Source: Octopus sinensis (taxonomy: Eukaryota). Taken from it: a DNA stretch of 64,000 bases. The notes below the pieces were generated by a model. The model worked only from the letters and a program-made list of their open reading frames with translations. It was not told where the DNA came from and did not search any database. The stretch's first letter is position 1. Every line of letters begins with the position of its first letter. The position numbers and the translations under genes are program-made. Of the stretch, positions 165 through 58,029 are shown piece after piece. Location of the stretch: positions 32,612,001 through 32,676,000 of the forward strand of contig NC_043007.1 in NCBI RefSeq assembly GCF_006345805.1, written 5' to 3'.

Positions 165-3100
165 GTGAGTATATTCCTCTCTCCTGTCATCACTTTAATT
201 AATAATCTGTGTCATCATTTAGTTTAAGAAACCTATTTTGTGGTCAGTATATTCACTTGTAAATCACTGTGCAAAATGCCTTCATCTGTCGTCGTGTTCT
301 GAGCTCCAATTCCACTGAGGTCAGCTTGCTTTTCATCCTTGTGCCTGGGGTAGAAAAGGACATATGTATATTGTGTCATTTGATGATGTGGATTCAGTTG
401 TTTAATCAACTGAATTACCTGCTCCTGAAATTAGTGGCTGAGCTTCCCACAGACGTGTGTACCCTTAAGGTAGGTCTCAGGTAGAATTAACGTGGCACTG
501 TGTTTGACCATTTTGAATCACAGGAATAATCCATTTGCCAGGCTTCCATTCAGTTTCTATCTACACAGTTTTACTCACAAGGTCTGGATTAAGCCAAGGC
601 TATAAAAAATGATATTTACCCAAGATGCCGGGCAGTGGGATTGAACTGTGGAGCAAATGGTTAACGAAACATAGTTTTGAAGACAAGCAATACATTTCTT
701 GGAACAAGTGTGGCTGTGTGGTTAAAAAGTTTGCTTCCTAACCATGCAGTCTTAGGTTCAATTCCACTGTACAGCACCTTCTTTTACATACCTGGGCTGA
801 CCAATGCCTTATCAGTGGATTTTGTTGATGGGAATTGAAAAAAAGCCTGTCCCGCGTGTGTGTTCCTTGTCTTGACATTAATGATAGTTGTAAATGAGTT
901 TCACTGTTATACAAGCGGTGTCATTCCTTTCCTACATTCTGCAAAAATATGTCTGGCCATGGGAAAATATTACCTTGCTAGGAACAGGTGAGGACTGATG
1001 ACATGAAGGGCATCTGGTTGTAGAAAATCTACCCCCACAGATCCCCTCAGACTCCTGCTTACAGGGGCAAGACAGAGTTTATTGAGGCAGATTTTCTATG
1101 GCTGGATGTGCTTCCTGTTGTCATCCCATATCTGTTTCCAAATAAGGTCATATTTTCTCATGGCCAGACATGTGTTTGCAGAGTATTGGAAATAATGACA
1201 CTGCTTCTGTGACAGTGGTACTCGTTTACATGATATCACATGCTGTCAAGAAAAGGAATACCCAAACACACACACACACATATATCCACACCACGTGTGT
1301 GTGTGATGGACTTGTTTCAGTTTCCATCCTCCAAATTCACTCACAAAGCTTTGGTCAGCTTGAGGCCATCATAGTGGAAGACACTTGACCAAGATGTCAA
1401 GTGGGACTGAACCTGAAACATTGTGGTTGGGAAGCAAATATTTTAACTATGTAACCACACCAGTGTCTTACAGATTGTAATTTAGATAATTTTCCTATTT
1501 TTATTATTTTCTGAAATAAAAAGATAAAATCTTGAATCGTCTTGAATCTGTTTGAAATGTTCATATAATTTGTTAATTTTTTTTCATTGAAATTTCTCTC
1601 ATTTTAGAAAGAAGACGATGTCACATTTTGCCACATCAAGCGAAACGGACTTTTTATCATGGCTGTAACGACCTGTAACATGTCTCCTATCTTTCTTGTG
1701 GAGTTCCTTACCAGGTTAGAATCATTAAATACTGTTTTTGAATTCAGAGTAGAGTCATACAGTGGTTGTGGAAATAATTAAACACATGGATTAGATTAAA
1801 TTATGTGGGGCCAGAACCCTATGTCTGCTTCTTGTGCCAGTGGCATGTAAAAAGCACCAACAGAACGTGGCCAATGCCAGTACCCCCAAACTGGCTTCTG
1901 TGCTGCTGGCACGTAAAAAGCACCAACCGATCATGGCCAGGTGAAATGCTTAGCAGTATTTTGTCTGTCTTTATGTTCTGAGTTCAAATTCCACCGAGGT
2001 TGACTTTGCCTTTCATCCTTTCAGGGTCGATAAATTAAGTACCACTTACGCACTGGGGTCGTTGTAATCGACTTAATCCCTTTGTCTGTCTTTGTTTGTC
2101 CCCTCTATGTTTAGCCCCTTGTGGGCAATAAAGAAATAAGTACCCCCTGACTTGCTCTTGCACTGGTAGCACATAGAAAGCGCCATCTGAACATGACCGA
2201 TGCCAGGCCCGCCTGACTGGCTCCTGTGCGTGACCTTAACCAGATGGCTCTGCCGGTCTGGAAATAATCTTGACAGCAGCATTTCCTTATCATTCGATGT
2301 ATGTCCATATATGAAGTAGGAACAGAGCAAGCCTGTGAGTCAAGGCAAGCCGCAGTAAATGGAGTTATGAGCCTTGGGCCTTGCTCAAAGAAATAAACAT
2401 AATTGGTGTTTTGGCATCACATAATATGCATCTATGCTGGCCCCCACATGAAAAGCACCTGTGCCAGGCCATGTGAAGAGTATCTCTGCTGGTGCTACAT
2501 GATAAGCACAGAGTACACTGTGTGGAGCAGTTGTTGTCAGGAAGGGCATCCAGCCATAGAAACCAAACCAGAACAGACAATGGAACCTTGTGTAGCCCCT
2601 GGACTTACCAGCTCCAGTCAAACCATCTAACCCACATCAGCATGGAAAACGGATGTTAAATGCAGATGGTATTGCTGATGGCGATGAGCCCCAGGTCAGA
2701 TTGAGTGGATCTATGACCAAAGCTGTTCCAGCCATGACCACTCCATCTTTTTCCGAGCAGCTGTGCATCAGGACCCCGTCGATTGATATCTGTACACCTT
2801 TATTCTTAAGACAACATGGGTAAAGCAGACATTAAAACAACGGTGAGGATGTAATTTATAGATTCCCTTTTCCTTTTCTTTTGCTAGGTTCTTCCTGATC
2901 TGCAAAGATTTCTGTGGAGTTGTCAGTGAAGATGCTATTCGAGCTAATGTTCTCCTGATTTATGAAATATTGAATGAGATTTTGGTAAGTAGGAGTTGTT
3001 GTCAGTTCTCTGTTAATTAACATCAAACAAGCATTTCTCCCAGCTCATAGTTCTGAGCTCAACTTTACCTTTCTACCTTCTGGGATTGATAAAGGGAATA

Positions 3101-4321
3101 TCAATTGCATATAAAAGTCGATGTAATTAACTATCCCCTTCCTTATAATTTCGGGCTTTGTGCCTATTATAACAGAAAGGGTCAATGTCGGATGTGTAAG
3201 GTACTGGAATGTGATCTCATATATTTGGTCCCTCTCTCTCTGTCTCTTGCCCTTGTTTTTCCTCTGACTAATCTCATTTCTCCTCATCCCAAACAGGGAA
3301 AAAAATTTTTTCACTATATTGTGGTTTTAAATCTGCAAGCATTTTAGTCCTGTCCCTGGGCAGAACTTGCAATTAAGAACTTTTCTTTCAGTAAATAAGA
3401 TATGTTATTTTATCAAGGACCTTATTTTTGTCTGAAATTCCCTAACACGAGTGATAAGTTCACAATTTTTGACAATGTTTATATTCATTGTTTTTTTATT
3501 AGGAATTTGGATACATCCAGTTGGCCACAACTGACAAGATTAAACCATATATCCAGTCAGATCCAGTCCTTGTTTTAGCTAACAGATCTCCGGCAGAAGA
3601 AATTGCATCAAGATTGGTAAGATAATTCCTATTTCCTTGGCTTCTAAACTCCGTCTGTGTGTGTGTGTGTGTGTGTGTGTGTTAATTGTATTAATTAATT
3701 TATGAGTCTGTATATCACCATACATATGTTAACCCTTTTTGATACCAACCTCCCTGAAAGCACTCCTTGTTCCGTTTTAAAACGAGCTTAATTAAAACCT
3801 ATCAAAATTGCATGTTAATTTATGTTCTAAACACCACCTTCATAACGACAAAGTTATATTATTAAATTCTTCGTTATCTTCAAAATTAATTAAAGCAAAA
3901 TCAGTCTCTTTCAGCAGCAATATGGTAAGAAAAGGGTTTATGGTTACACTTATTCAATGTTTACAGTGCATTTATATCAGGGGTTCTCAACCTTTTTTTT
4001 TACCTATGGACCCATTTGATTCCTATTTTACTCTATGAGTGGGGACCCTCATAGCCATTCATGATTAACCCTTTAGCTTTCATAATTACTCTGTCAAATG
4101 TGTTGCTTATTTATTCATATTGTTTTGAATTAATCAAGCATTATATAGGCGTAGGAGTGGCTGTGTGGTAAGTTGCTTGCCTACCAACCACATGGTTCTG
4201 GGTTCAGTCCCACTGCGTGGCACCTTGGGCAAGTGTCTTCTACTATAGCCTCTGGCTGACCAAAGCCTTGTGAGTGGATTTGGTAGACGGAAACTGAAAG
4301 AAGCTCGTCGTATATATGTAT

Positions 4322-4364
<43 letters not shown>

Positions 4365-7300
4365 CTGTGTATGTTTGTATTTGTCCCCCCAACATTGCTT
4401 GACAACCAATGCTGGTGTGTTTACGTCCCCGTAACTTAGGTTCGGCAAAAGTGACTGATAGAATAAGTACTAGGCTTACAAAGAATAAGTCCTGGGGTCG
4501 ATTTGCTCGACTAAATGCGGTGCTCCAGCATGGCCGCAATCAAATGACTGAAACGAATAAAAGAGTAAAAGAGTATATTGTAGCTTCAAGATTTCAATGA
4601 TATGTTTTTATATTTTTAGAATGACATTGTAGTGCAGGTGTGAGAGGTTGGATGTGGCCAATTTGTATATAAAACATGTAGCATATTTGGGCTGGATATG
4701 GCTGGATTAAATGCTAAAGGGTTAAATATTAAAAGGAATTGTATAAAAAATTGTTTTTTAATATTTTGTGCATTGTAGAAATATGACCAGTTTATTGCAC
4801 TTAAATTTTAACAACAAAAACTTTATATGTACTCCCAAAAGCCATATGGATCCCCTAGGGCCATATGAACCCCGGTTGAGAACCACTGATATATATGATT
4901 AATATATATATATATGTGATTAATTACCTCTGTGATTGATTTGTTTGATTAGTTTTTGTCCTGTGTTGAGGACATAACCTGAGCTTGTTTCCTCCTGAAA
5001 TCCTTCTTTCCAGTACCTTAACTGTACACAACTCCTCAAGCCCCTCCACCCCTCTGCCCCCACTCTACTCCACCAACTCAGCTAACACAGGGTTTGAATT
5101 CTTTGTCATTTTGAATTGTTTGTACTAATCACTACCCTTGCTGTCTTGTGTCCCTGGCTGAAACACTAACTTTCCCAAATGCTGTTCTTCTCAATGACCC
5201 TATCCTTGAAGCGCCTGAAACCCCAACACTCTGCACTATACTTCTGTTTTAGGAATGTGACCATTTGGAATTCCCTCTTTCTCTCCCTTCCTTCGTTCCT
5301 TCCGTCCTGCCTTCTTTCCTGATTTTTTTCCACAGATTATTAACCCACAGACATTCAAACTGAACTTCATCAACATCATTAAGGCCCTCTTCATTGACAT
5401 TAATTATTTAAAAAGTAAGACAAACTGTGATGACTGATTTTCGTCCTATGCATGTGGAAAAGAAATGTTATACCGAGAAGAAGCAGAACACATTTGGTTA
5501 GATACTGAATAATTAATATTAGAACTGTTGAGGGCTCATAGCCTACAGGTTAAGGTTTTGCACTCAAGATCCTAAGACCATGGTTTCAATTCGTTGACCA
5601 GGTGGTACATTGTGTTTTTGAGTAAAACACTTCATCACAAATTACTCTGCAATCATTTCAACACCTGAAGTGTGGTACACCTGTACAGGTAGTGTCAGTT
5701 TGATGAAGGGAGCGCTAATGTACAGCACATACATTTGACCATTATAAACAAAACATTCCTGCAGGTTGTTCGGTAAGAAATTGCAGAACTATCTTTCCTG
5801 GACTACAAGAGACTACCGTCCAATATTAGAACTATTGGCTAAAATTTTACTCGTTTATTTATGTCAGTCATTTGACTGCGGCCATGCTGGAGCACCGCCT
5901 TTAGTATACTTCTTATTCAGAAGTACCCTGAAGACTGCACGTGGCAGTTATTACTAAGGGAGGTAATTATCTCCTGACAATCTGAAACGGGAAAGGAACT
6001 TTGAAAAATACCCAAGAAACTTATCCATTGGCAGTTAAAAGATAGTTTTTCCCTCTGTTTCAGTTTGGAATAGAAACCAGAGTGGCTCCAAGTTCTGCTT
6101 CAAGTAAACCTGTTGTTAGAACAGCTGTGGAACAGGTAAATATCTCTCTCTAGTGCTCTTTGTCACTTGTGTCAACGTATATACACAGAACATCTATGCA
6201 ACAAACTTCTGTCTTTTCTTAAACCTGAAATCCAAATGGAATAAGTATTGGTTGAGCTGTGTACGATTAGTATGATTAGTGGTATTCAAACCATATTTTC
6301 TGGCATGCAAATCGATGTAGTATATAGTGTAAACATTCAAACATCATCACTGTCTTTCCCAAATCCTGCAACATTTCATGGCTGTGCGGTTAAGAAGCTT
6401 ACTTCCCAACCATGTGGTCCTGTGTTCAGTCCCACTGTGTGGCACCTTGGGATGGTGTCTTCTACTATGGCCCCAGATTGACTGAAGGCCTGTAAGTGGA
6501 TTTGGTGGATGGAAACTGAATATATTCTGTTTGTATATATATGTATGTGTCTGTGTATGTATGTATGTTCTTGTGTATAGCCATGTTTAGAAATCAACTG
6601 ATGGTGGTTAATAAACACCATCATGCAAGAAAGGTTGTTCGTTTATAGTCTTTCGCGAGAAACATGTCCAGCGATGGGAAACCAGTAAGGGGTGGCAACA
6701 GGAAGGGCATCCAACCATAGAAAATCTACCTCAACAAATACCATCTGACCCATGCAAGCACAGCAAAATGGACATTAAAGGAGAATGGTGATTGTGATAC
6801 ATACTTATGGAAGACGTTAAGAAGACCAGAAAATTCTAATGTTATTGGTCCCAAATTTTGGTGGAGGAGGGGTTAAGTCAATTACATCAACCCCCGCGCT
6901 CATCTGGTACTTATTTTATGGACCCTGAAAGTATGAAAGGCAAATTCGACCGTGGCAGAATTTGAACTCAAAATGTTAAGGCAGATGCCTGGCATGTTAA
7001 CGATTCTACCAGTTTGCCATTCTAAATTGTAATGTTATTAACAACATCTAATTTAATCATGAATTTAATGTGTACGATGGCAATAAATCTGATGTTTAGT
7101 TAATTAGCCAGCATGTATTTAGACATCTGTGTGTCGTTATCTTACTGGTTCCATTAACATAGATTTCATCCTAAATTCAATTTACATTTATTAACTGCTT
7201 AATTAACAAACTAATACTAACTTCTAATCTTAATGTTGTTTTCCATGCTATTTATGAAATAAACTTTACCACCTATTTATGTCACCAATACTAACCGTGT

Positions 7301-7926
7301 CCGGAAAGTTTGACACAAACATTTTTGCCACAGGTAAATTCAACTCAAGAATTTTGGCCACGGGAAATTTTGCCATAGGAAAGTTCACTGCACAGGAAAT
7401 TTTGCCGCAAGACAATTTCACCAAAAAAGGACGAATTGGTTCCTTGGTATATAATTGTTTCAACCAACTTATCTATTAGATTATTATGGTAAAACTACAG
7501 AGGTGGGGAAGGCAAAATAAAGCAATCTAAAAGACAGCTAAATATAAAACAGAATTATAAAAAACATATCTATTATATAAAATCCATTCTGTCTGTCTGT
7601 GTGTCTTCTAGGATCTCAGGCATTCTCCATCCAATTGCGCTCAAATTTGATATGTAGATACCGATGGTATCAGGGTGTGTATAAGTTTTGAAAAAATTAC
7701 AAAAATCGATTCCAGGTGAGAATGCGATTGATAAAGCCGTGGGAACGTGCATTTGTACGCACAAGTACATCAGTTGAAATCTGTCTTTTGCTGGTGTCTC
7801 AAATTTAGGTTAAATCAGTGTTTCTCAAAGGGGAGGCCTATGGGATGATCGGACAATTTGTTTTGAGAAAATCTGGTTTAAATGTTTGACAACTCAGCAC
7901 CGTCCATTGGACAGGGGGGTTTGCTC

Positions 7927-7968
<42 letters not shown>

Positions 7969-10390
7969 CAATGTTTTTCAGAGCTCCAATTTCTCTAAAT
8001 CAGGTTACCTGCCGTATCTTTGAAATTGTCCATGTGGTGAAATTATCTTACAGCAAAATTTCCTATTCAGCAAAGTTTGCTACGGTGAGTTTTCCTGCTA
8101 CAAAAATGTTCTTAGAACCAGTACTAACCATTTAATTCATGCAAGACAATGATGGAGCCTCATGTGGTTGCTTGACCTGCTAAAAATAACAGCCATGTTG
8201 TCTCAAAGGGAAGGTCACATTGGATATTGGACAGTGTTGTCTTACAGTTCTATATTTAAGAGACGTGGAATTATGTACATTATTTACATTTACTCCATAA
8301 TTGCCCATGGGCATATGGTGTAGTGGTTAAGAGTGTGGGCTACTAACCCCAAGATTCCGAGTTCGATTCCAGGCAGTTACCTGAATAATAATAATAATAA
8401 CAATAACAACAATTAGAATGATAATAATAACAATAACAACAACAACAAAAAAATACTTTAGGAATAAGAACCCAGGTTCGAAATTTCCCCAAGACACCTG
8501 ATGAAGGCTGGAGGGTATATCAGCCGAAACGTTGTGTTAACAACGAAGAAGATGAGGATAAATATCCGTCGAATGTAAATAATGTAAATAATGTAAATCA
8601 GTGTTGTCTTAGACGTAAATAGGAAAATTATATGATGATGATGATGATGATCACCATCATATGTTCCGTGCTAGCATGTGTGGGACGGTACCACAAGAGC
8701 CGGCCAGTGGAAATACCTCTGACCATAGACTTGCTCAGTCAAGGCTGACCTGGGGCTAAACAGCAGCAAGAACAACTTCATTTGTGCTCACTGCAAAATA
8801 AGAGAAATTACTGTTTTTTTTTTATCTCTGTTTGTTTCAGTCATTGGACTGTGGCCATGCTGGGGCACAACCTGGAAAGGGTTTAGTTCAAACCAACACC
8901 AATTACCAAGTGGTGTTGTGAGCACACATACACACACACAAACTTCCACTCAGTTTCCATCTACCATATTCACTCACAAGGCATGGGTCAGCCTAGGGCT
9001 ATAGTAGAAGACACTTGCCCAAGGTGCTGTGCAGTGGGTCTGAACTCAAAGCCATGTGGTTGCAAAGCTAGCTTCTTAACCACACAGCCAGGCCTGTACC
9101 TACAAAACCCACATTAGTAATTACATAATATTCTCTACATAATTTATGATACTAACTATTTAAACCAAACTAATTACAATCTTCATACTAATTACTGGCT
9201 GGCGTCACATGAAAAGCACCCGTGTCACGTAAAAAAACACTTAGTAAAAAACACTTACAGATGGTCTCGTCTACCTAACCTGACTCCATAATAAGTTTTA
9301 CTTAACCCCAAGCTGGCAGAAACGTTAGCACGCCGGGCGAAATGCTTAGCAGTATTTCATTTGTCTTTTATGTTCTGAGTTCAAATTCCACCGAGGTTGA
9401 CTTTGCCTTTCATCCTTTTGGGGTCGATAAAATAAGTACCAGTTGAACACTGGGGTCGATGTAATCAACTAGTCCCTTCCCTCAAAATTGCTGCCTATGT
9501 GGCAAAATCTGAAACCGTTGTTATTATCACCTCCACCTTAGCGAAGGTAGAGGTATTGTTTTTAGTTGTGTTTGTTTGTCTGTCCATGGACAAAATATCT
9601 TAAGAACTGCTGGATGGATTTGGATGAAACTTTCAGGGATGTTTGGCCTCGTGACTGGCACCAACTGATTAGATTTTGGGACCAATCCAGTACCGGACAA
9701 GGATTCTGGATTATTTTTCCAGTTTCTTTACTTAATTTTTGAGAGCAGTCAGGTCCATTTTTAGTATTCTCGTTTGTGAGAGCAGTTGAGTTTATATCAG
9801 ACATTCTCATTTTAAAAATCATCTTTAGCTAATCGTTCAGAGGGCATTGGGGTTGCCTTGGCAGAAGTTTGTGCTCTCTGAGTGCTCTTGTTATTATTAT
9901 TATTATTATTACTTGTACTATAGAAGGAATTATCATAACAGTGGACCAGCTTATGTACTTTTCTAATGTTTTGTATTGAACTGTTAGATTGTTTTGTATA
10001 ATACATGATTTAATGCACTAAGACCGGTTTTCTCTGAATAATTGCTGCACCTTTTATGCCATAAAATATGGTAATTTGTAAACTGACTGCATCTGAGGTG
10101 CAGTTCGAGTTTGTAAAATTATATATATATGTATGTATATGTATTGAGTTTTGGTTATCTAATTTGCAGGAAAACCGAAAAAATGAAATTTTTGTGGATG
10201 TAATTGAGAAAATGATTGTTGTCATTACAAACGATGTAAGCTGCAATTACAAAAAAATTCTTCTTTCTTTTCTGCATGTTTTAATTCTTTACATTGGAAT
10301 ATAAGCCTCAGATTCATAAAAGAGGAGTGTGTGTCTGTGTGTTTCTATCTCCTTGTCTTCACATTGCATGATTGTTGTAAATGAATGTTA

Positions 10391-10428
<38 letters not shown>

Positions 10429-13400
10429 TTAACGTCCGTTTTCTATGCTGGCATGGGTTAGATGGTTTGACTGAAGTCTGGCTAGCCAGGAGGCCATACC
10501 AGGCCATACCAGGCTCCAATCTGACCTGGCAATGTTTCTACAGCTGGCTTCTGTGGTTGGATGGTTTTCCTCATGGCAACCACTTTACAGAGTGTACTGG
10601 GTGCTTTTTTTCATGCCACTGACACTAGTGAGGTCACCAAATTAATTGCAAGACAGACAAGAATAGGAAAAAAAAAAAGCCCCATCAACTAAGGGGGTGG
10701 GGGCAAGCATTTGAGAGGAGTCGTGGTTTTATGATCATTTTGGTTCATAAAGACATGACCCCTCTCAGAATTTACACCCTTGATTCAGCAATGATGAAAA
10801 TTTGGTCATTGAAATTCTAGTCTCTTAGCAACAATTTCCGTCCTTTTGTTTCTTTCGTATTTTGCCTATTTCAGTTGAGCTCTTACTTTTTCCAGCTGCC
10901 TCCGTCTTGTATCTATAGGACACACACACACACACATGTGCGCATGCATGCACATGTATGTGTATAAATGTATTTTCACCAGCATTTTACCTCTGCTCTC
11001 CATGCTAACATGACTTGGACAGGTTGCTGTGATCCAAGTCAGTTCTTATTTGCAGTTACTCTCCTTTTTAGATGAAATGGTGGACCATGTTCTTCTTATA
11101 TTGGGTTGGTGCATAATTATTGTGGATTTTTCCAACAAATCTTAATTAACAAAAACAATAACAACATCATCATTATTATCATCATTGTCGTCGTCGTTTA
11201 ACATCTGCTTTCCATGCTGGCATGGGTTGGATGGTTTGACTGAGGACTGGTGAGCCAGAAGGCTGCACCAGGCTCAATCTGATCTGGCAAAGTTTCTACA
11301 ACTGGATGCCCTTCCTAACGCCAACCACTCTGAGAGTGTAGTGGGTGCTTTTATGTGCTACTGGCACGGGAGCCAGTCGGGCGGTTCTGGCAACGACCAC
11401 GCTCAAAAGGTGTTTTTTATGTGCTACCTGCCCAGGAGCCAGTCTGGCAGCACTGGTAATGACCACGCTTGAATGTTGTTTTTCATGTGTCACCAACACA
11501 TGTGCTGGTACGGCGAAGCTGGCAACGATCACACTCAAATAGTGCTTTTTATGTGCCACTGGCACAGGAGCCAATCCGTGACCCTGGCAACAATCACACT
11601 CAGATGTGCTTTTAACGTTCCACTGGCATGAGTGCCAGTCAAGCAGTACTGTCATTGGCCACATCTTTAAATGATTATTCTGGAGCATATTCACTATCTA
11701 CTTCAATTACTGCTTCCCATTTGCTGGGCAGACGGTTAGACTGTCATTTAACCCTTTTGTTACTGTATTTATTTAGAGATGCTCTGTGTTTCTTTCAATT
11801 ACTTTAATTATGACAAATAATTTAGTTATCATTCAGCTAGTGTTAGGAACATGAATTGTGACTAAGGTTTGGTGGGAGATTTTAATTAAAAACTTATGAA
11901 AACAAGACATTTGTACTACAGAGCCAGAGCCGGTTTCAGCTGGGTTGGTAATGAAAGGGTTAAAGATGTTTTTGTTGAATAAAATTTGTTGAAAAAAAGC
12001 TGCAATAATTATGCACCAACCCAAAAGGTTCCATTTTGGCATGGCTTCTATGACTGGACGGCCTTCCTTATACCAACACAAATGCATACACATGAATATT
12101 ACATATAGGTCTTCCACAGTTTTCATCTATCAAATTCACACTACAGCTGGATGCCCTACCTAACGCCAACCACTCCGAGAGTGTGGTAGGTGCTTTTGCA
12201 TGAGGGCCAGTCGGGTGGTTCTGGCAACGACCATGCTCAAAAGGTGGCCCAGGGCTTATAGTAGAAGACACTTGCCTGAGGTGTCATGCAGTAGGATTGA
12301 AACCAAGACCACAATGCTGCAAAATATGCTTTTTAACCTCTCAGCCATGCTGGCACCTATATAGACACATCCTTCTGTACAGACCCCAAATAACACAAAG
12401 GGCTATAAGAACCACTATTATCCTCTAGTTTATTTTATACTCAGCTATTTTAAGGATTTGCTTTATTTTATTATTATTATTATTATTGATATGTTGACTA
12501 TGTTTTTTCAGGGGCTTGTGTCACGTATGGATGTCACAGGAAATATAAATGTAAAGAGTTTTTTAAGTGGTAATCCAGTAATTAAATTAGCTGTTAATGA
12601 GGATCTCACACTTGCTGAACAGGGCAAGCCAAAAGGTAAAATTGATTGATTTTTTTTTAACGACATTATTAATTTGCTGTTTTGTGTCCCATAACACATT
12701 AACTTATAAGGGAACCCTTTAAGATTTGTGTAGTGCTAGTACCATGTGAAAAGCACCCAGTACCCTCTGTAAATGTGGTTGGCATTAGGAAGGGCATTCA
12801 GCTGTGGAAACTATGCTGAAGCGGACAGCAGAGTTAGGCATAATCCTCCGGCTAATGTTGAACCATTCAACCCATGCTAGCATGGGAAAACGGACATTCA
12901 CTGACGAGGACAAGTATATCTAGAGAGGCCTTTCAATTCAGCTTTACTGATTTCTTTCTCTTTTTACTTGTTTCAGTCATTTTGACTGCGGCCATGCTGG
13001 AGCACCGCCTTTAATCGAGCAACTCGACCTCAGGACTTATTCTTTGTAAGCTCAGTACTTATTCTATCGGTCTCTTTTGCCGAACCGCTAAGTGACGGGG
13101 ACAAACATACATGCACATACATGTATACGACATGTCTACCAAATCCACTAAGTGACGGGGACAAACATACATGTATACGACATGTCTACCAAATCCACTC
13201 TCAAGGCTTTGGTTGGCCCAAGGCTATAGTAGAAGACACTTGCCCAAGGTGCCACGCAGTGGGACTGAATCCGGAACCATGTGGTTGGTAAACAAGCTAC
13301 TTACCACACAGCCATCACAAGATGATGGATCTTCATCATTCTATCTACTGTCCATTTGCCATGCTGGCATGGGGTGGATGGTTTGACCAGGGCTGCTAAG

Positions 13401-15524
13401 CTCTACTGTCTGCTTTGGCATGGTTTCTATCTATGGCTGGATGCCCTTCCTAATGCCAAACACACCTGGAAGTTACAGACTGCACCTGCTGCTTACCATT
13501 GTGTCTATTTCCAACTAGGGAAACAGGGTCATCTGAGAGTTCCATGGCTTACTCATTGCACAGGGCAACGTTACTGATTGTTTACGAATTGTGTATCTTT
13601 CAATCAGTAAGACCAATTCCCCTGTATCGATTCTTGTCAGAGCGAGTTCTTTCTATCTAATTTAGTTTGATTTATAAGTAGGGACAGGTATGGCTGAGTG
13701 GTTAAGAAGCTTGCTCTGCAGCCATGTGGTTTTAGGTTCAGTCTCAATGCACAGCCCTTTGGGCAAAGGTCTTCTACTATTGCCTTTTACTTGTTACAGT
13801 CATTTGACTGCAGCCATGCTGGGGCACTGCCTCGAAGGGCTTTTATCAACTAAAACAGATTAACCCTAGTACTTTCAGTTTCCCTCTACCAAATCCACTC
13901 AAAGCCTGAGGCTATAGTTGAAGACACTTGCCTAAGGTGCCCTGCAGTGAGATAGAACCCAGAGCCAGGTGGTTGGGAAGTAAGCTTCTTACCACACAGC
14001 CACGCCTGTACACTTCCTTTTGTCTTTTGAAATTTAGATATTTTTTCACAAAATCTCAAACAATCATACTCTTATCCATCTTGTATTAAATTCAAAATGG
14101 TTTTCTCTTCTTTTGTGCAAATGTAGAGATTCTTCTTCACCTTTAAATGGTAAAGACTTATTCATACCTGACTCTTTCAGCAGAAATAACTTTGTTTCTT
14201 CCTAGATTTCAACAGCCATGTAACCATGGAGCAATGCAGTTTCCATCAATGTGTTCGCAAAGAAGAATTCAACACTTCCCGATGTCTTATACTCAATCCT
14301 CCCATTGGTGAGGTAATCATGTCTTTTCCTTATGTTTCTACATAAAATTTGCTTTCATCGAAAAAAATATTGTCTCGAGTCAAAAGTTTTGCAATATTTT
14401 AATAACTTGTTTGCTTTATTGATCGAGTTATAACAAAAACAGCCCAGCATTCCAAGTAGGGGCCATCTGAAGCCGCCTTCCTGCCGGCTCTTTGATCTCA
14501 TTCTGATACGATTTCTCGTCCTTTGAGGGTGAAGAACTCCTTTACTGAAGCTTCCTCTTGGTTGATGAAGTGTTGCAAGTGCATCTTGTCATCATCATCA
14601 TCCAGTGTTTTAAATCTGGGTTTTGTCCTCATTAACAGGGGTGGCTGGATCTACCTCAATGCCATAGCAACCAAGGTAGGCAGGTGCAGCCCACCCCAAC
14701 CTTTGGGCTGGCTGGTGCCCAATCTCCCTTGCTATCATGAGGCTTTTTTGGAGCTGGATTTTCTACGGGGAGCATCCCCTTGCTTACCCCCCACCTCAGT
14801 TTCTAGACAGGAGTGGTCCCAAGACCAAGGCATCTACCATGATTTTTAAGAAATGTGGTGGAAAACTAGCTCAGGAAGGTAGGGATGCTACTCTCTGAGA
14901 CCCCTTTCGGAGCCCCTCTACCTTATATATTTCTTTATTGTCCACAAGGGGCTAAACAAGGACAAAGGGAGTAAGTCGATTACATTGACCCCAGTGCGTA
15001 AATGGTACTTTATTTATCGACCCAGAAAGGATGAAAGGCAAAGTTGACCTTGGCGGAATTTGAACTCAGAACGTAACGGTAGACGAAATATCGCTAAGCA
15101 TTTTGCCCGGCGCGCTAACGTTTCTGCCAGCTCCCCTCTACCTTATATGCCATCAAATACATCTTTCAAAAGCAGTAACATTGATGTACTTGTAGATAAA
15201 TAATAAATATACTGGTAGATATTCTTGTAATATTGATGGACTTGTAGATTTCTGTCTGTTTTTTACAGTTTTCTGCTATGACGTACAGACTGGCATCGGA
15301 TCCTCCTCTAAAGCCGCCATTTAGATTACAAGTACAGGAAAAGGATTTTGACTCGCCGTAAGTATTTTGTGTTTCTTGGTGTGACACAGGTGCAGTTTTG
15401 GCTGTGTGGTCTTTGGCTCAATCTCACTGTGCAGCACCTTGTGAAAGTGTCTCTTCTGCTATAGCCCTGGGCCAACCAAAACCTTGTGAGCAGATTTTAT
15501 AGATGGAAACTGAAAGTTACCTGC

Positions 15525-15555
<31 letters not shown>

Positions 15556-18500
15556 TCTTTTTATTGTTTCAGTCATTTGACTGCGACCATGCTGGAGCAC
15601 TGCCTTTTGTCGACCAGACAGACCCCAGGACTTATTCTTTGTAAGCCTAGTACTTATTCTATCTGTCTCTTTTGTCGAACTGCTAAGTTATGGCGACAAA
15701 CACAGACACGCAAACATATATATATATATACGACGGGCTTCTTTCAGTTTCCGTCTGCCAAATCCACTCACAAGGCTTTGGTCGGTGCCCGAGGCTATAG
15801 TAAAAGACACTTGCCCAAGGTGCCACGCAGTGGGACTGAACCTGGAACCATGTGGTTAGTAAGCAAGCTACTTACCACACAACCAATCTTATATATATCT
15901 ATGTATGTGTGTGTGTGTCCCCGTGTACCCTTGCCTGGACATGATGGTTGTAAGGAGCATCATGTAAGCAATGTTGTTTGTTTCCTGTCTTCCAATGGAA
16001 ACACGTCTACCTATGAGAAAGCATTACCTTGCTTGAAAGCAGGTGAGGGTTGGTGACAGGAAGAACATCCTGCCCTAAAAAAATCTGCCTCAGTGACTTT
16101 GTCTGACCCACGTGAGCAGGGAAAAGTGGACATTAAATGATGGTGATGGTTATAATGATGACCAGATCAGTGGAGTAGCTTAGAATGACACTTCATTGCA
16201 ACCTTCACAAGTTTTCCCCTGTAAATCATATTTACCAGTTGCCATGGTTCCTTGTCATATCTTCTGTGTGAGGTTCAGATTATTGTTTGTTTGGAGAAAA
16301 TAAAAGGAAAGAAAGGCCGAATGGTTGGGGCCTCTGACTAACACTTCATTGTTTCCCCTTTTAATTTGTAGCTCCAGGGACACCTGTTTGTCACTCCAGT
16401 TACTTAGTCACATCCCAGAAAACACAGAAGCCGTAAATATTGTGTTAAGAATTCCTGTGCCGGGAACAGTTTCTGGGTGAGTAGCATTATTGTTGTGTTT
16501 AATATCCTTTCTATTGTAGGCACAAGGCCTGACACTTTTGGGGAGAGGGCTAGTTGATTATATCGACCCACAGTGCGTAACTGGTACTTATTTAATCGAC
16601 CCTGAAAGGATGAAAGGCAAAGTCGACCTTGGTGGAATTTGAACTCAGAACGTAACGGCAGATGAAATACCACTAAGCATTTTGCCCGGTGTGCTAATGA
16701 TTCTGCCAGCTCGTTACCTTAATATCACTTTGATACTTAATTGTGGAAGTACATGGTCTAGTGGTTAGGATGGTGGACTCATGGTCATAAGATTGTGGTT
16801 TCAATACCTGGACTGGACTGTGCATTGTGTTCTTGAGCAAAACTTCATTTCATATTGCTCCAGTCCACTCAGCTGTAAATGAGTAACCCTGTGACAGACT
16901 GGCGTCCTGTTTAAGGGGAATGTCGTGATCTTGATTACTCACACCCCATGGAAACTGGAGAACCAGTCCTGTGAGTCCCAGCACTTGAAACAGAATTTTA
17001 CATTTACTTTGCTCATATTTAATCTCTGTAATGTCATATTGTAGATTTGTTTCCCCCAAATGAAACTAGAAACAGAATTATATTTAGTGCCACAGTCCCT
17101 TCACTGCTGGGGGTCAGGACAGACAATTGTTGTGGTGATGATGATGATAGCTGTTGGACCAGAAGCACATGTCCACAACTGTCCTCTTATCTCCAAATAA
17201 TGAATCTGTCCTTTTCTTTAATGGCATGTCACCTTTGAAGAATTCTTGATTCTTGAGATTATTTCCCCTCCCTAGAACAAGTCAAGAATTTATGTTAGTA
17301 CACCTTCTTCCCAACTAGTGATCTCTCTCTCTCTATATATATATATACTATTGGAAGTTGCTCACAAGGTACTGGAATCTTATATGTATACCTTTCTGCC
17401 TAAATAATGGATCTACAAATGTCATATCCCTACATATCTTATGTCTATCTTCATTCTCTATTCCATATCTTATCTAAAATAACTATTGCTTAACCATTCT
17501 CTCACACCATCTCCAATGAAGGGATATATAAAATATCCCGGAAAAAGCTGTAAGACTTTCTATTCATAAATGTTCTGAAATCTTTCATAGCCTTGGATTT
17601 TTATCTCATTCTGAAAAAAAAATATATATATATATACATACACAGGTGAAAAAAGCATCAGAGATGTTTTGCTCCATGCAGAAACTACAAAAGGTATTCT
17701 AATGTTCTGAAAGCTTTTCTAAATCCATTGCAATGCTGGAAACCCTTCTGCATCATCAGCCGGTATCTCAGGGTCACAAGCATTTCACCCCTTAGCCTGT
17801 ACTGTTCGCCTGAGTGGGGCAGCAAAGACTGAGCTAGTCTTCACCTATGGAAAGGGTTCCACATTCCTATTATCAAAAGCTTTTTCTTGGTGATTGTAAA
17901 GATATAAGCATCTTTTGACACCAACCCCACGTCCCCTTGCAGGGTAATGACCCATGATGTATTATTGCCTTCAGCTGCCTGGAACTTCATCTTTGCCAAC
18001 ATCCACTAGAATCGTAATTTACATTGTACCATTTCTCAAAGACCAGTAATCTAATTGACAGAACAAGATCTCCGTGATAAACTGATGCCATTTCTTCTTC
18101 ACTGTTTTAACCAGTGTTAGATATGATAAGCAATTGGAAACTACAACATGAGCCATTCCTTTTTGTAGTGGTGGGCACAGCAGTTTCTGATTCTTCTGAA
18201 TAGACCTCATGGTGGTAAACTGTAAAGTTTTTATTGAGTTCAGAAAAATCACATCTCACTTTTTTTAAAATGCACGCTACTTTTTTCTACGTTCAAGGGC
18301 TCAAGCCAGTGAGGGACCTCTACATAGTTTTTTGACCTGTTAGAAATAGCAGCAAAAGTTTCCCTCAAACCACACCTACTATCTTAGTTACCTAAGCCCT
18401 TTACTCCCTAAGGAGTGACAACTTTCCCCCACTGTTCTTGGCTGCGGGGCCACTCCCTCAGTATGGCATGGGGCCACCCATATAAATTTCCCCAAGGGAA

Positions 18501-19816
18501 GGCCTTCCTCTCCTAGACCTTGTTGGTTTTGAATTCTCATCGATATCTCTGTAACTTTGCTTTTTTCTAGGAAGGTGTGTCAGGCCAATGCAAACCCATT
18601 TTCACTGACAAAAAATGATTAATTAATTTCTTTTGAATGGTTTTTATTTTTAGACTTGTTACCAATTCCGATGTTTTTAATCCTAATCCTTGTTTTTTCC
18701 TTCTTCAACTTATTCCAGGATTAGCCAACAGCTAATTGGACCTGATCAAACTATAGAGTTAAAAGCCTCTAATAAACAAATTGTATGGAATATAAAAAAG
18801 TTTCCTGGTGGTTCTCATTTAAATGCCAATCTCAGAGTAAGTTTTGTATTTTTTGTTTTGCTTTCCTTAAGTAGCTGACAGTTATTTCTCTCATTTTAAA
18901 CAATTATTACCTTTATGTTGTTGTGCAATCGACATCCAGAATTCAGAATAGTGTAAAGAATGGTTGCTGTTGTCCAAGGATTTGATACATTTTTTTTAAA
19001 GATTAAAAGACTCTTCATCGCCGTTTAATGTCCATTTTTCCTTGCTTGCATGGGTCGAATGGAGTTTATTGAAGCAGATATTTTACAGCTGGATGCTCTT
19101 CCTGTTTCCAAGCACAGTAATATTTCCCCATTGCCAGATATATTTTCGCAGAATATTGGAAATGGATAATAGAAAATTACTATTTTTAAATCTCACAACG
19201 AGAAATATTCAGCAACAGTACTTTGGAGTAATGGCAGTCCTCAAAGTTATAAGGACACAGATCGTGTTGTATAGCCAGCTGGAGACAATGTCTCATGGGG
19301 CTAAATTACAGCAACATTCGTCCTAAACCAGGACTGCCATGTTATGTTGGCAAACAATCTTTACTCCAATGGATAACTATGGAATGTCACGACAAGGAGA
19401 CACAAACACATATATTCAGTTTCCATCAACCAAATCCACTCACAAAGCTTTGGTCAGCCCAAGGCTATTGTAGAAGATACTTGCCTAAGGTACCATGCAA
19501 TGGGACTGAACCTGGAACCATGTGGTTGGTAAGCAAGCTACTTACCACACAGCCACTCCTGTGCCTATATAGTGACTTTATAAAAACCCATCCAACTGCT
19601 TTTTTCTCTCTTTTGTTTCAGTTGATCAGCAACAGTGGTGTGAAAACTCGTTTGAAAGACATCGGACACATTGTCATGGAATTTGAAGCATCAGGTTACA
19701 CTTGCTCCGGCATCCAGATTCGTTATTTGCGTGTTTTTGACCGAGACCAAGCTTATGTGCCATACCGCTGGATTCGATACATAACAGTCAGCGATTCATA
19801 TGTTTTTAAACTGTAA
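79..19816 (+). CDS. AP4M1: AP-4 complex subunit mu-1, spliced gene, 5'-partial; join(79..164,1608..1714,2888..2984,3503..3616,6064..6135,10170..10235,12512..12635,14206..14312,15269..15357,16372..16476,18719..18836,19622..19816)
   Basis: Twelve AG/GT-bounded exons splice in consistent phase (1280 nt, entering in phase 1, ending TAA). Translation has adaptin-mu motifs: HIKRNGLFIMAVT, ICKDFCGVVSEDAIRANVLLIYEILNEILEFGYIQ, RKNEIFVDVIE, SFLSGNPVIKLAVNEDL, FHQCV..PPIGEF, MEFEASGYTCSGIQIRYLRV, YRWIRYIT. Exon sizes/phases (107, 97, 107) match the human AP4M1 exons as I recall them, favouring mu4 over mu1-3. Confidence 0.93.
1608..1714 (+). CDS. AP4M1: AP4M1 exon 3 (KEDDVTFCHIKRNGLFIMAVTTCNMSPIFLVEFLTR)
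   Basis: ttttAG acceptor, GTTAGA donor, 107 nt, longin-domain motif. Confidence 0.92.
2888..2984 (+). CDS. AP4M1: AP4M1 exon 4 (FFLICKDFCGVVSEDAIRANVLLIYEILNEIL)
   Basis: ttgctAG acceptor, GTAAGT donor, 97 nt. Confidence 0.95.
3503..3616 (+). CDS. AP4M1: AP4M1 exon 5 (EFGYIQLATTDKIKPYIQSDPVLVLANRSPAEEIASRL)
   Basis: tttattAG acceptor, GTAAGA donor, 114 nt. Confidence 0.93.
3733..3936. mobile_element. piggyBac-like MITE
   Basis: TTAA|CCCTTTT ... AAAAGGG|TTTA termini. Confidence 0.6.
4069..4721. mobile_element. piggyBac-like MITE interrupted by a family A SINE
   Basis: TTAA|CCCTTTAGC ... GCTAAAGGG|TTAA; same family as 40034-40252 in opposite orientation. Confidence 0.75.
4148..4574 (+). mobile_element. 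tRNA-derived SINE family A (about 430 bp), full length
   Basis: head ggcgtaggagtggctgtgtggtaag..gggttcagtcccactg, internal (TA)n/(TG)n, tail aaatgactgaaac..aaagagtaaaagag; many copies in the window. Confidence 0.85.
5190..5390 (+). mobile_element. degenerate CR1/L2-type LINE 3' relic
   Basis: frame reads KRLKPQHSALYFCFRNVTIWNSL then QTFKLNF, resembling the CR1 RT C-terminal F..R....WNSLP motif. Confidence 0.5.
6064..6135 (+). CDS. AP4M1: AP4M1 exon 6 (FGIETRVAPSSASSKPVVRTAVEQ)
   Basis: gtttcAG acceptor, GTAAAT donor, 72 nt, APSSA..KP linker motif of mu4. Confidence 0.9.
7297..8121. mobile_element. foldback/MULE-like MITE with long TIRs built from about 15-bp subrepeats
   Basis: 7318-7436 is an imperfect reverse complement of 8020-8110 (e.g. 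ggaaattttgc.gcaagacaatttcacca); TACTAACC direct repeat at 7289-7296 and 8122-8129. Confidence 0.65.
7569..7927 (+). mobile_element. Helitron-like non-autonomous element nested in the foldback MITE
   Basis: A|TCTATTATATAAAA..(gtct)n head; ends ..gggggtttgCTCG|T (variant of CTAG); no TSD. Confidence 0.5.
8245..8598 (+). mobile_element. tRNA-headed, hammerhead-containing SINE/retrozyme-like element (family D), copy A
   Basis: 13-bp TSD CAGTGTTGTCTTA (8232-8244, 8599-8611); A-box TGGTGTAGTGG 8316-8326; B-box GAGTTCGATTCC 8359-8370; HHR; (AATGTAAAT)n end; inverted tail copy 8245-8291. Confidence 0.8.
8493..8538 (+). ncRNA. minimal type-I hammerhead ribozyme motif
   Basis: GACAC-CUGAUGA-A-GGCUG(GAGGGUAUAU)CAGCC-GAAA-CG-UU^GUGUU: stem I GACAC/GUGUU, stem II GGCUG/CAGCC, palindromic AACGUU stem III, conserved CUGANGA/GAAA core; activity untested. 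Confidence 0.7.
9521..9892 (+). mobile_element. Helentron/HINE (DINE-1-like) non-autonomous element
   Basis: subterminal inverted motif acctccacc..ggcagaagt, (gtct)n near the 5' end, 3' hairpin gtgctctctgagtgc; second copy at 23390-23705 on -. Confidence 0.65.
10170..10235 (+). CDS. AP4M1: AP4M1 exon 7 (ENRKNEIFVDVIEKMIVVITND)
   Basis: tttgcAG acceptor, GTAAGC donor, start of mu-homology domain. Confidence 0.95.
11190..11670 (-). mobile_element. RTE-tailed SINE-like family C with internal about 62-66 bp tandem units
   Basis: tail (minus) ..acccatgccagcatggaaagcagatgttaaacgacga; tandem units ..gtgccactggcac..gaccacgctc. Confidence 0.75.
11752..11959. mobile_element. piggyBac-like MITE
   Basis: TTAA|CCCTTT ... 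AAAGGG|TTAA, 208 bp. Confidence 0.75.
12512..12635 (+). CDS. AP4M1: AP4M1 exon 8 (GLVSRMDVTGNINVKSFLSGNPVIKLAVNEDLTLAEQGKPK)
   Basis: ttttcAG acceptor, GTAAAA donor, 124 nt. Confidence 0.95.
12962..13314 (-). mobile_element. SINE family A with internal tandem duplication
   Basis: reverse complement of 4148-4574; segment ctaagtgacggggacaaacatacatg..atgtctaccaaatccact repeated twice (about 13087-13200). Confidence 0.85.
14206..14312 (+). CDS. AP4M1: AP4M1 exon 9 (DFNSHVTMEQCSFHQCVRKEEFNTSRCLILNPPIGE)
   Basis: ttcctAG acceptor, GTAATC donor, 107 nt, FHxCV and PPxGE motifs. Confidence 0.95.
14370..14590 (-). mobile_element. mariner transposon 3' relic
   Basis: minus strand HFINQEEASVKEFFTLK then (frameshift) YQNEIKEPAGR, like the mariner transposase C-terminus; TA + TIR-like ttgtctcgagtcaaaagttttgc at 14368-14392. 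Confidence 0.65.
15269..15357 (+). CDS. AP4M1: AP4M1 exon 10 (FSAMTYRLASDPPLKPPFRLQVQEKDFDSP)
   Basis: ttttacAG acceptor, GTAAGT donor, 89 nt. Confidence 0.92.
16372..16476 (+). CDS. AP4M1: AP4M1 exon 11 (SRDTCLSLQLLSHIPENTEAVNIVLRIPVPGTVSG)
   Basis: tttgtAG acceptor, GTGAGT donor, 105 nt, phase 2 to 2 bridging exons 10 and 12; A.NI.LRIPVP motif. Confidence 0.88.
16755..16985 (+). mobile_element. tRNA-derived SINE family E
   Basis: tggtctagtggttaggatggtggactc head; gttcttgagcaaaac..ctccagtccactcagctg core; related copies at about 22950-23275, 28965-29240, 60800-61045 and 62665-63002 (all -). Confidence 0.7.
18719..18836 (+). CDS. AP4M1: AP4M1 exon 12 (ISQQLIGPDQTIELKASNKQIVWNIKKFPGGSHLNANLR)
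   Basis: ttccAG acceptor, GTAAGT donor, 118 nt, W.IKKFPGG motif. Confidence 0.94.
19622..19816 (+). CDS. AP4M1: AP4M1 terminal coding exon (LISNSGVKTRLKDIGHIVMEFEASGYTCSGIQIRYLRVFDRDQAYVPYRWIRYITVSDSYVFKL*)
   Basis: long pyrimidine tract + cAG, 65 codons ending TAA, C-terminal mu motifs. Confidence 0.96.
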   Translation: MISNSGVKTRLKDIGHIVMEFEASGYTCSGIQIRYLRVFDRDQAYVPYRWIRYITVSDSYVFKL

Positions 19817-48137: not shown

Positions 48138-48285
48138 ATTATTTACATTTGATGGATGTTTGTTGGTAATGCAGCATTTCGCCTGATGTGCCCTCCAGCC
48201 TTCATTGGGTGACTTGGGGGAATTTTTCGAACCTGGGTTTTCATTCCTAATGTGTTTTTCAACCTCATTATTATTATTAGCATAA
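48138..48285 (-). mobile_element. family D copy C, 5'-truncated, decayed hammerhead core
   Basis: reverse complement reads aacccaggttcgaaa..ccccaagtcac-CCAATGA-A-GGCTG-gagggcacat-CAGGC-GAAA-TGCT..catcaaatgtaaataat. Confidence 0.7.
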
Positions 48286-56367: not shown

Positions 56368-57607
56368 AACTAAACTCTTCAAAGCAGTGCCCCAACATGG
56401 CCACGTTTCAATGAGAGAAACAAGTAAAAGATAAAAGAAATTACTAATGAAGACAAAGATTTCTATGAATGATGAGATTCTATTTAACCTTGGTTCATCA
56501 TCATCATCATCACCACCAGGTTTATGTTTTTGCTCACTGATAACAATGATCTCCTTTTCACATTCAGATTCCAACAAAGATTCTTTTGAAAAAATATATA
56601 AGTATTGTACCTGGTTTACATATTTTATCAGTAACCCACTCCCCGACCCTTCTAAACACCCTGGGCCTCCTACAGCACCCTTGTGAATTTTTAACATCAC
56701 TCAACCCCAAGGAGATGCTTTTGCCCTGCTTAAGAAACAACGATCTAAATATCATCATCATTTAATGCCGGTTTTCCCTGCTGGCATGGGTTGGATGGTT
56801 TGACTGAGGACTGGCAAACCAGATGGCTGCACCAGGCTCCAATCTTATCTTGCAAAGTTTCTACAGCTGGATGCCCTTCCTAACACCAACCACCCCAAGA
56901 GTATAGTGGGTGCTTTTTACATGCCACCAGCATGGGAGCCAGTCAGGCGGTACTGTCATTGGCTACATTCGGACAGTGCTTTTTACATGCCACCGGCATA
57001 GGAGCCAGTCAGGGCAGCTTTGGGGGAGGACCTGGCATCGACTACGTTCAGATGGTGCTTTTTACGTGCCACTGGCACGGGGAGCTAGTCAGGCAGCACT
57101 GGCAATGACCCACGCATGAATCATGCTTATTGTGTGCCACCAGCACAAGAGCCAGTCAAGCAGCACTGGCATCGGCCACATCTGCAATTTCCATTTTGAT
57201 TTAATTTTTGGGATTTTTAGATGGAGAATAAACCAATTGAAAGGCACGACATAATGTTAAACTCAACACAGAACATGAGTACAAGAACGTGGTACAGCTG
57301 TTTTGGCCCTCCTCTCCAATTCAGTGTCACCAATTCAAGGCTGACTTATTTGATACCAAATATTCCTCTCCACGCTAATGTGTGTGAGCATCTAGTCATG
57401 TTTGTATATATAATGCTCTTTTCTCTTCACTTCTCTGTGTATATTTCTGCATGAGTGAGCATGTGTATGTGCCTCCAGTGTCACAGCATCATCATCGTTG
57501 TTTAATGTCCACCTTCCATGCTAGCATGGGTGGAACGGTGCCACAAGAGCCAGGCAGGCCAAAGCCTGCACCAGACTTCTGTGACTGTTTTGGCAGGATT
57601 TTTACAG

Positions 57608-57920
57608 CTGGGTTCCCATTCCTAAGGTATTTTTCAATGTTGTTGCTATTGCCTAGAATTGAACTTGGAATCTTGGGGTTAAGAGTGCGGGCTACCAACC
57701 CCAAGATTCCGAGTTCGATTCCAGGCAGTGACCTGAATAATAACAACATCGAAAAATACCTTAGGAATGAGAACCCAGGTTCGAACTTTGCCCAAGACAC
57801 ACGATGAAGGCTGGAGGCTATATCAGCTGAAACACTGTGTTAACAACAAACAACATAAGGACAAATAGCCATCAAATGTAAATAATGTGCATAATTCCTC
57901 ATCTCTTAAATACAGAACTG
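57608..57920 (+). mobile_element. family D copy B with 5' foldback inversion and decayed hammerhead core
   Basis: clearly similar to 8325-8590; core reads ACGATGA..GAAACACT; 57608-57680 is the reverse complement of 57697-57778. Confidence 0.8.
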
Positions 57921-58029
57921 AAATAAACTTCCATACTAAGACAAATAAAATTAAGAAGAACTGCAAAAATATTCAGTATAAAGTGGGCAAGTAATATTTC
58001 ATGCATGTGCTTCATCGTTTGGCCCTCTC

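Follow-up and report, generated by a model that had tools for sequence, protein, structure and literature searches.

Penelope-like elements (PLEs) carry minimal hammerhead ribozyme (min-HHR) motifs with a short helix I and no helix III loop, a nucleotide left unpaired after position 9 and before 10.1, a conserved G10.1-C11.1 pair, and a palindromic 15.2-16.2 segment through which two copies build helix III jointly (Cervera & de la Pena 2014, PMC4209133). According to the same authors and a later review, single motifs show no activity and dimers low or slow activity; the role of hammerheads in PLEs is acknowledged in the literature as unknown, and min-HHR motifs lie dispersed by the thousands in animal genomes, away from any PLE open reading frame (ORF) (PMC7761336). 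Octopus genomes consist to about 12% of short interspersed nuclear elements (SINEs), mostly unclassified and without a known partner, and PLEs are among their recently active retrotransposons (PMC13282606). Here we examine a 64-kb stretch of the Octopus sinensis genome (C11:32612001-32676000 in an assembly of 2.72 Gb; 'the window', within which positions are given), where a motif of this type lies in a SINE-like repeat inserted into an intron of an AP-4 mu-like gene. The explanation we consider probable is that a PLE-type min-HHR forms part of the consensus of this octopus repeat, that the repeat is copied by PLE machinery, and that the copy in the window is near-silent.

A minimal hammerhead motif in a dispersed octopus repeat

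The motif comprises 46 bases of the forward strand, GACAC CTGATGA A GGCTG GAGGGTATAT CAGCC GAAA CG T T GTGTT, whose features fit the min-HHR description in PMC4209133:

8493-8538, +, minimal type-I hammerhead motif
8493-8497 / 8534-8538, +, stem I, four Watson-Crick pairs and one G-U pair
8498-8504, +, core CUGAUGA (C3-A9)
8505, +, extra A after A9, unpaired before G10.1
8506-8510 / 8521-8525, +, stem II, five Watson-Crick pairs
G8506-C8525, +, G10.1-C11.1 pair
8511-8520, +, stem II loop GAGGGTATAT
8526-8529, +, GAAA (G12-A15.1)
8530-8531, +, C15.2-G16.2, followed by U16.1 (8532) and U17 (8533)
8529-8532, +, palindrome A-C-G-U, which would allow a dimeric helix III
between U17 (8533) and G1.1 (8534), +, predicted scissile bond

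The canonical hammerhead core (C3-A9, G12-A14, A15.1-U16.1, H17) is complete, and helices I and II pair around it. Helix I, at 5 bp, lies within the min-HHR range of 4-5 bp, and helix II has five Watson-Crick pairs, or six with an added G-U in the minimum free energy (MFE) fold, against 6-8 bp in the min-HHR definition. A helix III hairpin is impossible in cis, with just C-G between A15.1 and U16.1 and no loop. The first-pass annotation, made from the letters of the window, had treated the extra A and the single-pair stem III inside a palindrome as oddities; all are present, but as published traits of PLE min-HHRs they are not defects, and A8505 is a hallmark rather than a flaw because an unpaired nucleotide after A9 defines this class (PMC4209133). 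To judge by its letters, the motif at 8493-8538 is a genuine PLE-type minimal type-I hammerhead motif.

Chance would supply a loose CTGATGA...GAAAC pattern 0.36 times per window. A full descriptor (core, G10.1-C11.1, paired stem II, palindromic 15.2/16.2, U16.1, a base other than G at 17 and four or more of the five stem I pairs) matched once in the window, at the motif itself, leaving no second intact motif, and had no match on either strand of 300 first-order Markov simulated 64-kb windows (19 Mb). The position and complete core that the annotation had assigned to the motif thus agree with the sequence.

Across the 2.72-Gb assembly the exact 46-mer occurs 761 times and its reversed control not at all, and the motif is therefore the consensus of a repeat, as the genome-wide collection of copies proposed with the annotation also returned. 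Searching with the surrounding 250 nt gave 2,426 first-look candidates, the copies being 86-90% identical, and a pattern anchored outside the motif matched the genome 5,761 times. Members of the family measure about 280 nt and number at least about 5,000, mostly single or arranged as inverted dimers; tandem arrangement is rare, confined to occasional partial tandems. The carrier of the motif is non-coding rather than a PLE's terminal repeat or 3' region; in the PLE loci and genome scans described below, no ORF-bearing element had the motif or its flanks in common with it. A working consensus of 278 nt was built from 42 oriented copies. It opens with a head (1-74) in which A- and B-box-like motifs can be read, continues through an (AAT)n stretch and a body to the hammerhead (145-190), and closes, after about 35 nt, with tail repeats (AATGTAAATA)n; some copies extend beyond these by an optional long tail of 31 nt, CATAATTCCTCATCTCTTAAATATAGAACTG. 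Identity of the window copy to the consensus is 95.6%. We found no description of the family, or of any SINE with an RNA polymerase III (Pol III) head paired with PLEs, in the literature searched, whose coverage was incomplete.

Insertion architecture and the Penelope-like elements of the genome

The copy that bears the motif is one arm of a larger unit, laid out as follows:

8232-8244, no strand, left target-site duplication (TSD) CAGTGTTGTCTTA (13-mer), abutting the unit
8245-8306, -, inverted, internally deleted partner arm, whose reverse complement aligns to consensus 228-278
8309-8598, +, full-length repeat copy, the short-tail arm
8309-8382, +, tRNA-like head, read from the sequence
8316-8326, +, A-box-like TGGTGTAGTGG, a sequence match
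8359-8370, +, B-box-like GAGTTCGATTCC, a sequence match
8383-8440, +, internal (AAT)n/(AAC)n microsatellite, of variable length among copies
8572-8598, +, tail of 10-nt repeats (AATGTAAATA)n at the arm end (short tail)
8599-8611, no strand, right TSD CAGTGTTGTCTTA (identical 13-mer), abutting the unit

The unit (8245-8598) is an inverted dimer within a 13-bp TSD, and in its partner arm the long tail (the reverse complement of ...GTACATAATTCCACGTCTCTTAAATATAGAACTG) is accompanied by tail repeats and by a stub of 12 nt from the head, CCATAATTGCCC (8295-8306). This arrangement recurs in the family: an inverted partner, often 5'-truncated, stands at the 5' end in 21 of the 29 best copies and in the window unit, and further loci show inverted and tandem combinations. 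In all 19 clear pairs (19/19) the long tail is found on exactly one arm, the other ending in the 10-nt repeats, and about 10 of the 19 units, that of the window included, have direct repeats of 8-13 bp on either side of the dimer as a whole. Because these direct repeats enclose the whole pair, each pair represents one insertion, the typical outcome of which is a head-to-head inverted dimer.

PLE insertions are depicted in closely similar terms in the legend to Fig. 2 of PMC8557442, with an adjoining inverted 5'-truncated copy, a tail of 30-40 bp confined to one end and a hammerhead close to the 3' end. Set against that legend, the octopus repeat has the inverted 5' partner and, at one end only, an extension of 31 nt where 30-40 bp are published. 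Integration of the repeat is PLE-like, which is a new point of this analysis, and because its insertion architecture matches the published picture we infer that PLE machinery mobilises it.

Suitable machinery is at hand, as the octopus genome is rich in PLEs that seem to have been active recently. A GIY-YIG profile found 4,846 candidates, with open frames of up to 883 aa and the endonuclease at the C terminus, and head-to-head pairs of truncated PLEs occur, for instance at C15:17222472(-)/17222815(+). The 3' untranslated regions (UTRs) of these PLEs carry min-HHRs some 60-90 nt from the 3' end, among them TTGATAAGGTTC...GAACCGAAACATGT, a published U3-A8 variant, and CTGATGAAACTAC...GTAGTTGAAAGCGCT.

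The family with open frames of up to 883 aa has many near-identical copies (L038:2370-2470, L037 on the reverse strand, L068:1269 and L069:1196); its U3-A8 hammerhead (TTGATAAGGTTC...GAACCGAAACATGT) lies about 60 nt from the 3' end, and its terminal (TA)n would suit a preference for microsatellite targets. PLE hammerheads of six or more additional types were seen in the genome (L071:1497, L079:1467, L083:1473, L084:1417, L072:1088, L074:492, L076:3298, L039:977 and L085:768), with the palindromes AGCGCU, AGCGUU, ACGAUCGU or AGUACU and, in most, a bulged base after A9.

Variation, predicted activity and the host gene

Variation was recorded over an 87-nt stretch in 86 copies chosen regardless of the motif. 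The sole free core position, N7, reads CTGATGA in 57 copies and CTGAAGA in 27, and U4 is replaced by C in 6 of the 86. Outside CpG sites, the core has substitutions at a rate of 3.9% and the flanks at 4.7%; the stems range over 4.3-5.6%, and the loop reaches 7.2%. Copies decay neutrally after insertion, and the full descriptor still matches 21 of the 86. The family consensus carries U16.1 and not C, C16.1 being found in 183 anchored copies genome-wide, nearly all of which retain U4.

The window holds two further copies of the repeat:

57677-57938, +, older copy, about 72% identical, with a long tail and a decayed core (ACGATGA, C16.1)
48159-48259, -, older partial copy, with a decayed core (CCAATGA, C at 16.1)

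That their cores are broken had been noted correctly in the first-pass annotation; since C16.1 is confined to those 183 copies with U4 nearly always kept, the breaks are private decay. The two copies had suggested that CTGATGA of the motif might itself be private CpG decay from CCCGATGA. This was rejected, CTGANGA being the consensus; C at U4 in 6 of the 86 copies and the retention of U4 in C16.1 copies speak against it as well. Just upstream of the longer old copy, an inverted segment (57600-57676) contains head and body (consensus ~37-133) and no tail; tail-less inverted arms also occur in L010, L012 and L021 and look like snap-back copying, not like a second 3'-primed arm.

A precise 3-nt deletion at the predicted cut site, GAAACGTTGTGTT to GAAACGTGTT (consensus 181-190), removes U16.1 and U17 in 17 of the 86 copies (for example L003, L009, L022, L023 and L028), at similar frequency on both N7 backgrounds (10/57 CTGATGA, 6/27 CTGAAGA); other indels in the stretch are limited to a few copies each. 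The same product would arise from a template jump across a cleaved junction by way of GU microhomology, and slippage or a sub-lineage explains it equally well. The two arms of one insertion differ at N7 in L004 and L029 and by the 3-nt deletion in L022, and share private variants in L013 and L028, so that arms may come from two RNAs or from one.

Folded alone, the 46-mer reaches -11.2 kcal/mol with the designed stems I and II, against -12.6 kcal/mol for its MFE structure. In the MFE fold of 8480-8552, stem I gives way to a hairpin over the predicted cut site:

8531-8544, +, competing hairpin GUUGU-GUUA-ACAAC (6 bp, 8530-8545, in the window copy)

The predicted energy of the dimer helix is -8.3 kcal/mol for AGCGCU and -4.6 for ACAUGU, both of PLEs, and -1.7 for the 4-bp ACGU of the repeat. 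Were cleaved RNA often reverse-transcribed, many copies would be expected to start at G1.1; such copies are not enriched, with 3 independent junctions at the predicted cut against 3 at a control 10 nt downstream, and the apparent G1.1 junctions are mostly leak-through of the 3-nt-deletion variant. One of the 3 is a 46-nt satellite (GTGTTAACAACAAACAAGATGAGGACAAATATCCGTCAAATGTAAA) of at least 45 units (L092:235-2301; G000:C30:3578934-3581000 and beyond), in which G1.1 opens the unit and the first tail repeat closes it, and an inverted long-tail arm precedes the array. As a cleavage footprint the satellite is suggestive, and the search that found it was aimed at that very junction. RNA cleavage by the lone window copy is probably poor or absent.

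The unit lies within an AP-4 mu-like gene whose exons span 1626-19813 on the forward strand. A tblastn search with human AP4M1 gave collinear forward-strand matches on both sides of the repeat, at 1626-1727 and 2865-2984, taken as upstream exons, and at 10038-10241 and later, and the mu homology domain is encoded further downstream:

12494-12676, 14202-14330 and 19607-19810, +, exons of the mu homology domain (PF00928 matches)

The best PDB match of the last of these exons (19607-19813, its PF00928 match ending at 19810) is AP-4 mu-1; the weaker collinear tblastn matches comprise 1626-1727, 2865-2984, 6064-6135, 10038-10241 and 18720-18827. With such matches on both sides, the unit is intronic and its hammerhead arm sense, as the first-pass annotation had placed it, the flanking exons being identified by PF00928, the PDB match and tblastn. 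Its further suggestion that the motif could cut the AP4M1 pre-mRNA is unlikely to hold, in view of the single motif, a 4-bp helix III of -1.7 kcal/mol, the competing hairpin and the absence of a truncation excess at the cut; no second intact motif lies in the 64-kb window with which the pre-mRNA could form a dimer in cis. The copy is young (about 4% diverged) and neutrally decaying, and from its weak 4-bp dimer fold would be expected to be catalytically near-silent alone and without effect on the host pre-mRNA. It is most likely a neutral intronic insertion; as it looks like an ordinary one, the host gene is probably unaffected. Directly downstream of the unit, 8632-8760 comprises a (GAT)n/(CAT)n run and then a different abundant repeat (...CGTTTAACGTC.GTTTTCCATGCTAGCATGGGTTG.ACGG...), which recurs beside PLE copies (L038:2480-2700 and L072 after ~1230).

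Competing explanations and comparison with known systems

In the explanation we favour, the repeat would be a non-autonomous element copied by the reverse transcriptase and GIY-YIG endonuclease of PLEs, which are abundant in the genome, and its hammerhead-bearing 3' module would descend from, or mimic, a PLE 3' end. Like other min-HHRs, it would reach the active fold only by pairing its ACGU with that of a second copy, a contact that would be weak at 4 bp. For the repeat, the motif may serve in the processing of multimeric or dimeric transcripts, or as a fold recognised by the PLE enzyme.

Several results weigh against this explanation. Similarity searches linked the repeat to no PLE: BLAST of the consensus against 30 + 20 GIY-YIG loci gave microsatellite matches only, and the best local alignment to PLE 3' UTRs (z = 3.4) fell below the null maximum of shuffled controls. 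Three negative-filter genome scans (hammerhead, body start and terminal tail in foreign context) returned just indel variants and junctions of the repeat itself, and neither they nor 50 PLE loci, an incomplete sampling of PLE families, contain an autonomous PLE, or any other element, with the 3' sequence of the repeat. No Rfam hammerhead family matches at its gathering score, nor at E<=10 on 8250-8700, a comparison that had been put forward as a check on the motif; for a motif without a helix III hairpin this is expected. Core conservation above background is absent among the 86 copies (3.9% against 4.7% in the flanks), which is uninformative because inserted copies decay neutrally, and no compensatory covariation is seen in the stems of these 86 copies of one family. 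With U16.1 and U17 missing from 17 of 86 copies, the repeat may be able to spread without an intact cleavage site, and the 10-nt tail repeats are also compatible with a stringent LINE (long interspersed nuclear element) partner. The head fares likewise: even with its thresholds relaxed, ARAGORN finds no tRNA in the window or the consensus, and at E<=10 the head has no match to the Rfam tRNA model. What had been called a tRNA-headed SINE is a short repeat, dispersed in the genome, whose head (8309-8382) shows Pol III A- and B-box-like motifs at what reads as tRNA-like spacing but has no confirmed origin from a tRNA; since neither program recognises the head, 'tRNA-headed' refers to the box motifs alone.

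It is very unlikely that the motif is an active self-cleaving ribozyme, with the repeat RNA and the AP4M1 pre-mRNA cut after U17 (8533) by a monomer or an intermolecular dimer. Core, stems and a base other than G at 17 are intact, partner RNAs exist given 761 identical copies and a descriptor match in about a quarter of the sampled copies, and the 3-nt deletion (17/86, on both N7 backgrounds) and the 46-nt satellite starting at G1.1 are possible footprints. Against this, helix III is impossible in cis and amounts in trans to 4 bp at -1.7 kcal/mol, the cut site is hidden by a competing hairpin, min-HHRs in the literature have no activity as monomers and low activity as dimers, and the window lacks a second intact motif; the footprints themselves are offset by cut-site junctions that equal the control (3 vs 3) and by the aimed search that yielded the satellite. 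At the other extreme, the stem II hairpin region could be the 3' recognition structure of a LINE-mobilised SINE, or the core a relic or product of chance, and thus without catalytic meaning. The 10-nt tail repeats vary in number as they do with CR1/L2-type partners, covariation and conservation above the flank rate are lacking, a deletion variant has spread without U16.1 and U17, and neither an Rfam match nor a PLE with a matching 3' end was found. This alternative is nonetheless unlikely, as the full descriptor has no match in 19 Mb of simulated sequence and the motif reproduces idiosyncratic PLE traits, namely the bulged nucleotide and the palindromic 15.2-16.2. The 3'-anchored inverted arms, one-arm tail and single TSD are footprints of PLEs, as far as the published figure legend describes them, and not of LINE/SINE pairs, and no LINE sharing the terminal tail turned up in the terminal-tail scan.

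A third possibility, which we consider rather unlikely, is that the motif matters as a fold and not as a nuclease, forming a hammerhead-like three-way junction or dimer that is bound by the PLE enzyme or pairs two template RNAs. If true, it would explain the two-armed insertions: these are dimers, whose arms come at times from different variants (L004, L029, L022) and at times from one and the same (L013, L028), ACGU, being palindromic, is by design suited to dimerisation, and the role of the hammerhead in PLEs is acknowledged as unknown. The argument is purely inferential, however, a 4-bp contact is weak, and the deletion variant lacking ACGU is still common. A more ambitious version of the favoured explanation, in which a Pol III-headed SINE is mobilised by PLEs, by analogy with SINE-LINE pairs, and its min-HHR is functional in vivo, is to be regarded as tentative and rather improbable. 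Pairing through ACGU would then join two template RNAs, cleave them, or do both, and the 3-nt deletion (17/86) and the satellite starting at G1.1 would reflect reverse transcriptase jumps across cleaved ends.

If the family does combine PLE-type footprints with a PLE-type hammerhead, it offers a concrete partner hypothesis for part of the SINE expansion in octopus and would explain the thousands of min-HHRs found away from PLE ORFs in animal genomes (PMC7761336). It also provides a natural system for the role of the PLE hammerhead, in which about 800 motifs are identical and others vary at N7 or carry the deletion at the cut site.

Among described systems, classical tRNA-derived SINEs and their LINE partners share with the repeat the A and B boxes, dispersed high copy number, TSDs of variable length, short tandem tail repeats and subfamilies. 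The octopus repeat differs in its two-armed inverted dimers and asymmetric 31-nt tail, in that no LINE-derived 3' region was found, and in a head that escapes tRNA recognition by ARAGORN and Rfam. Metazoan non-LTR retrozymes (PMC7761336; bioRxiv 10.64898/2026.07.22.740005) are likewise non-autonomous and hammerhead-bearing, with a proposed dependence on PLE machinery, but form tandem units of 170-400 nt that give rise to circular RNAs through canonical hammerheads with loop-loop contacts; in the octopus repeat the head is of Pol III type, tandem copies are rare and the motif is the minimal one. 'Retrozyme hybrid', the term first given to the element, is therefore not the best description for copies that are mostly dispersed inverted dimers with TSDs and not tandem, circle-forming units.

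Sm-alpha and Sj-alpha of Schistosoma (Ferbeyre 1998; Laha 2000), as summarised in PMC6765202, are short non-coding retroposons that also combine a Pol III-type promoter with a type-I hammerhead. Compared by description only, and within what that summary covers, they are largely tandem and contain a canonical hammerhead with proven in vitro cleavage, whereas the octopus repeat has the minimal form of the motif, dispersed inverted dimers and a cleavage site predicted from its letters.

A further counterpart is the PLE min-HHR itself. In PLEs it sits in the pseudo-LTR (long terminal repeat) of an ORF-bearing element, whereas the carrier of the octopus motif measures about 280 nt and begins with a tRNA-like head; helix II has 6-8 bp in the former and 5 (or 6) in the latter, and the intermolecular helix III of the repeat, ACGU, is the shortest possible, next to AGCGCU or ACAUGU in PLEs of the same genome. 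Both have the CUGANGA/GAAA core, the unpaired nucleotide between A9 and G10.1, the G10.1-C11.1 pair, the palindromic 15.2-16.2 and no helix III loop. They further share a 5-bp open helix I and thousands of dispersed copies, as reported in PMC4209133 and by Lunse et al. 2017 as cited in PMC6765202, and in both the motif lies some tens of nucleotides from the 3' end of the element.

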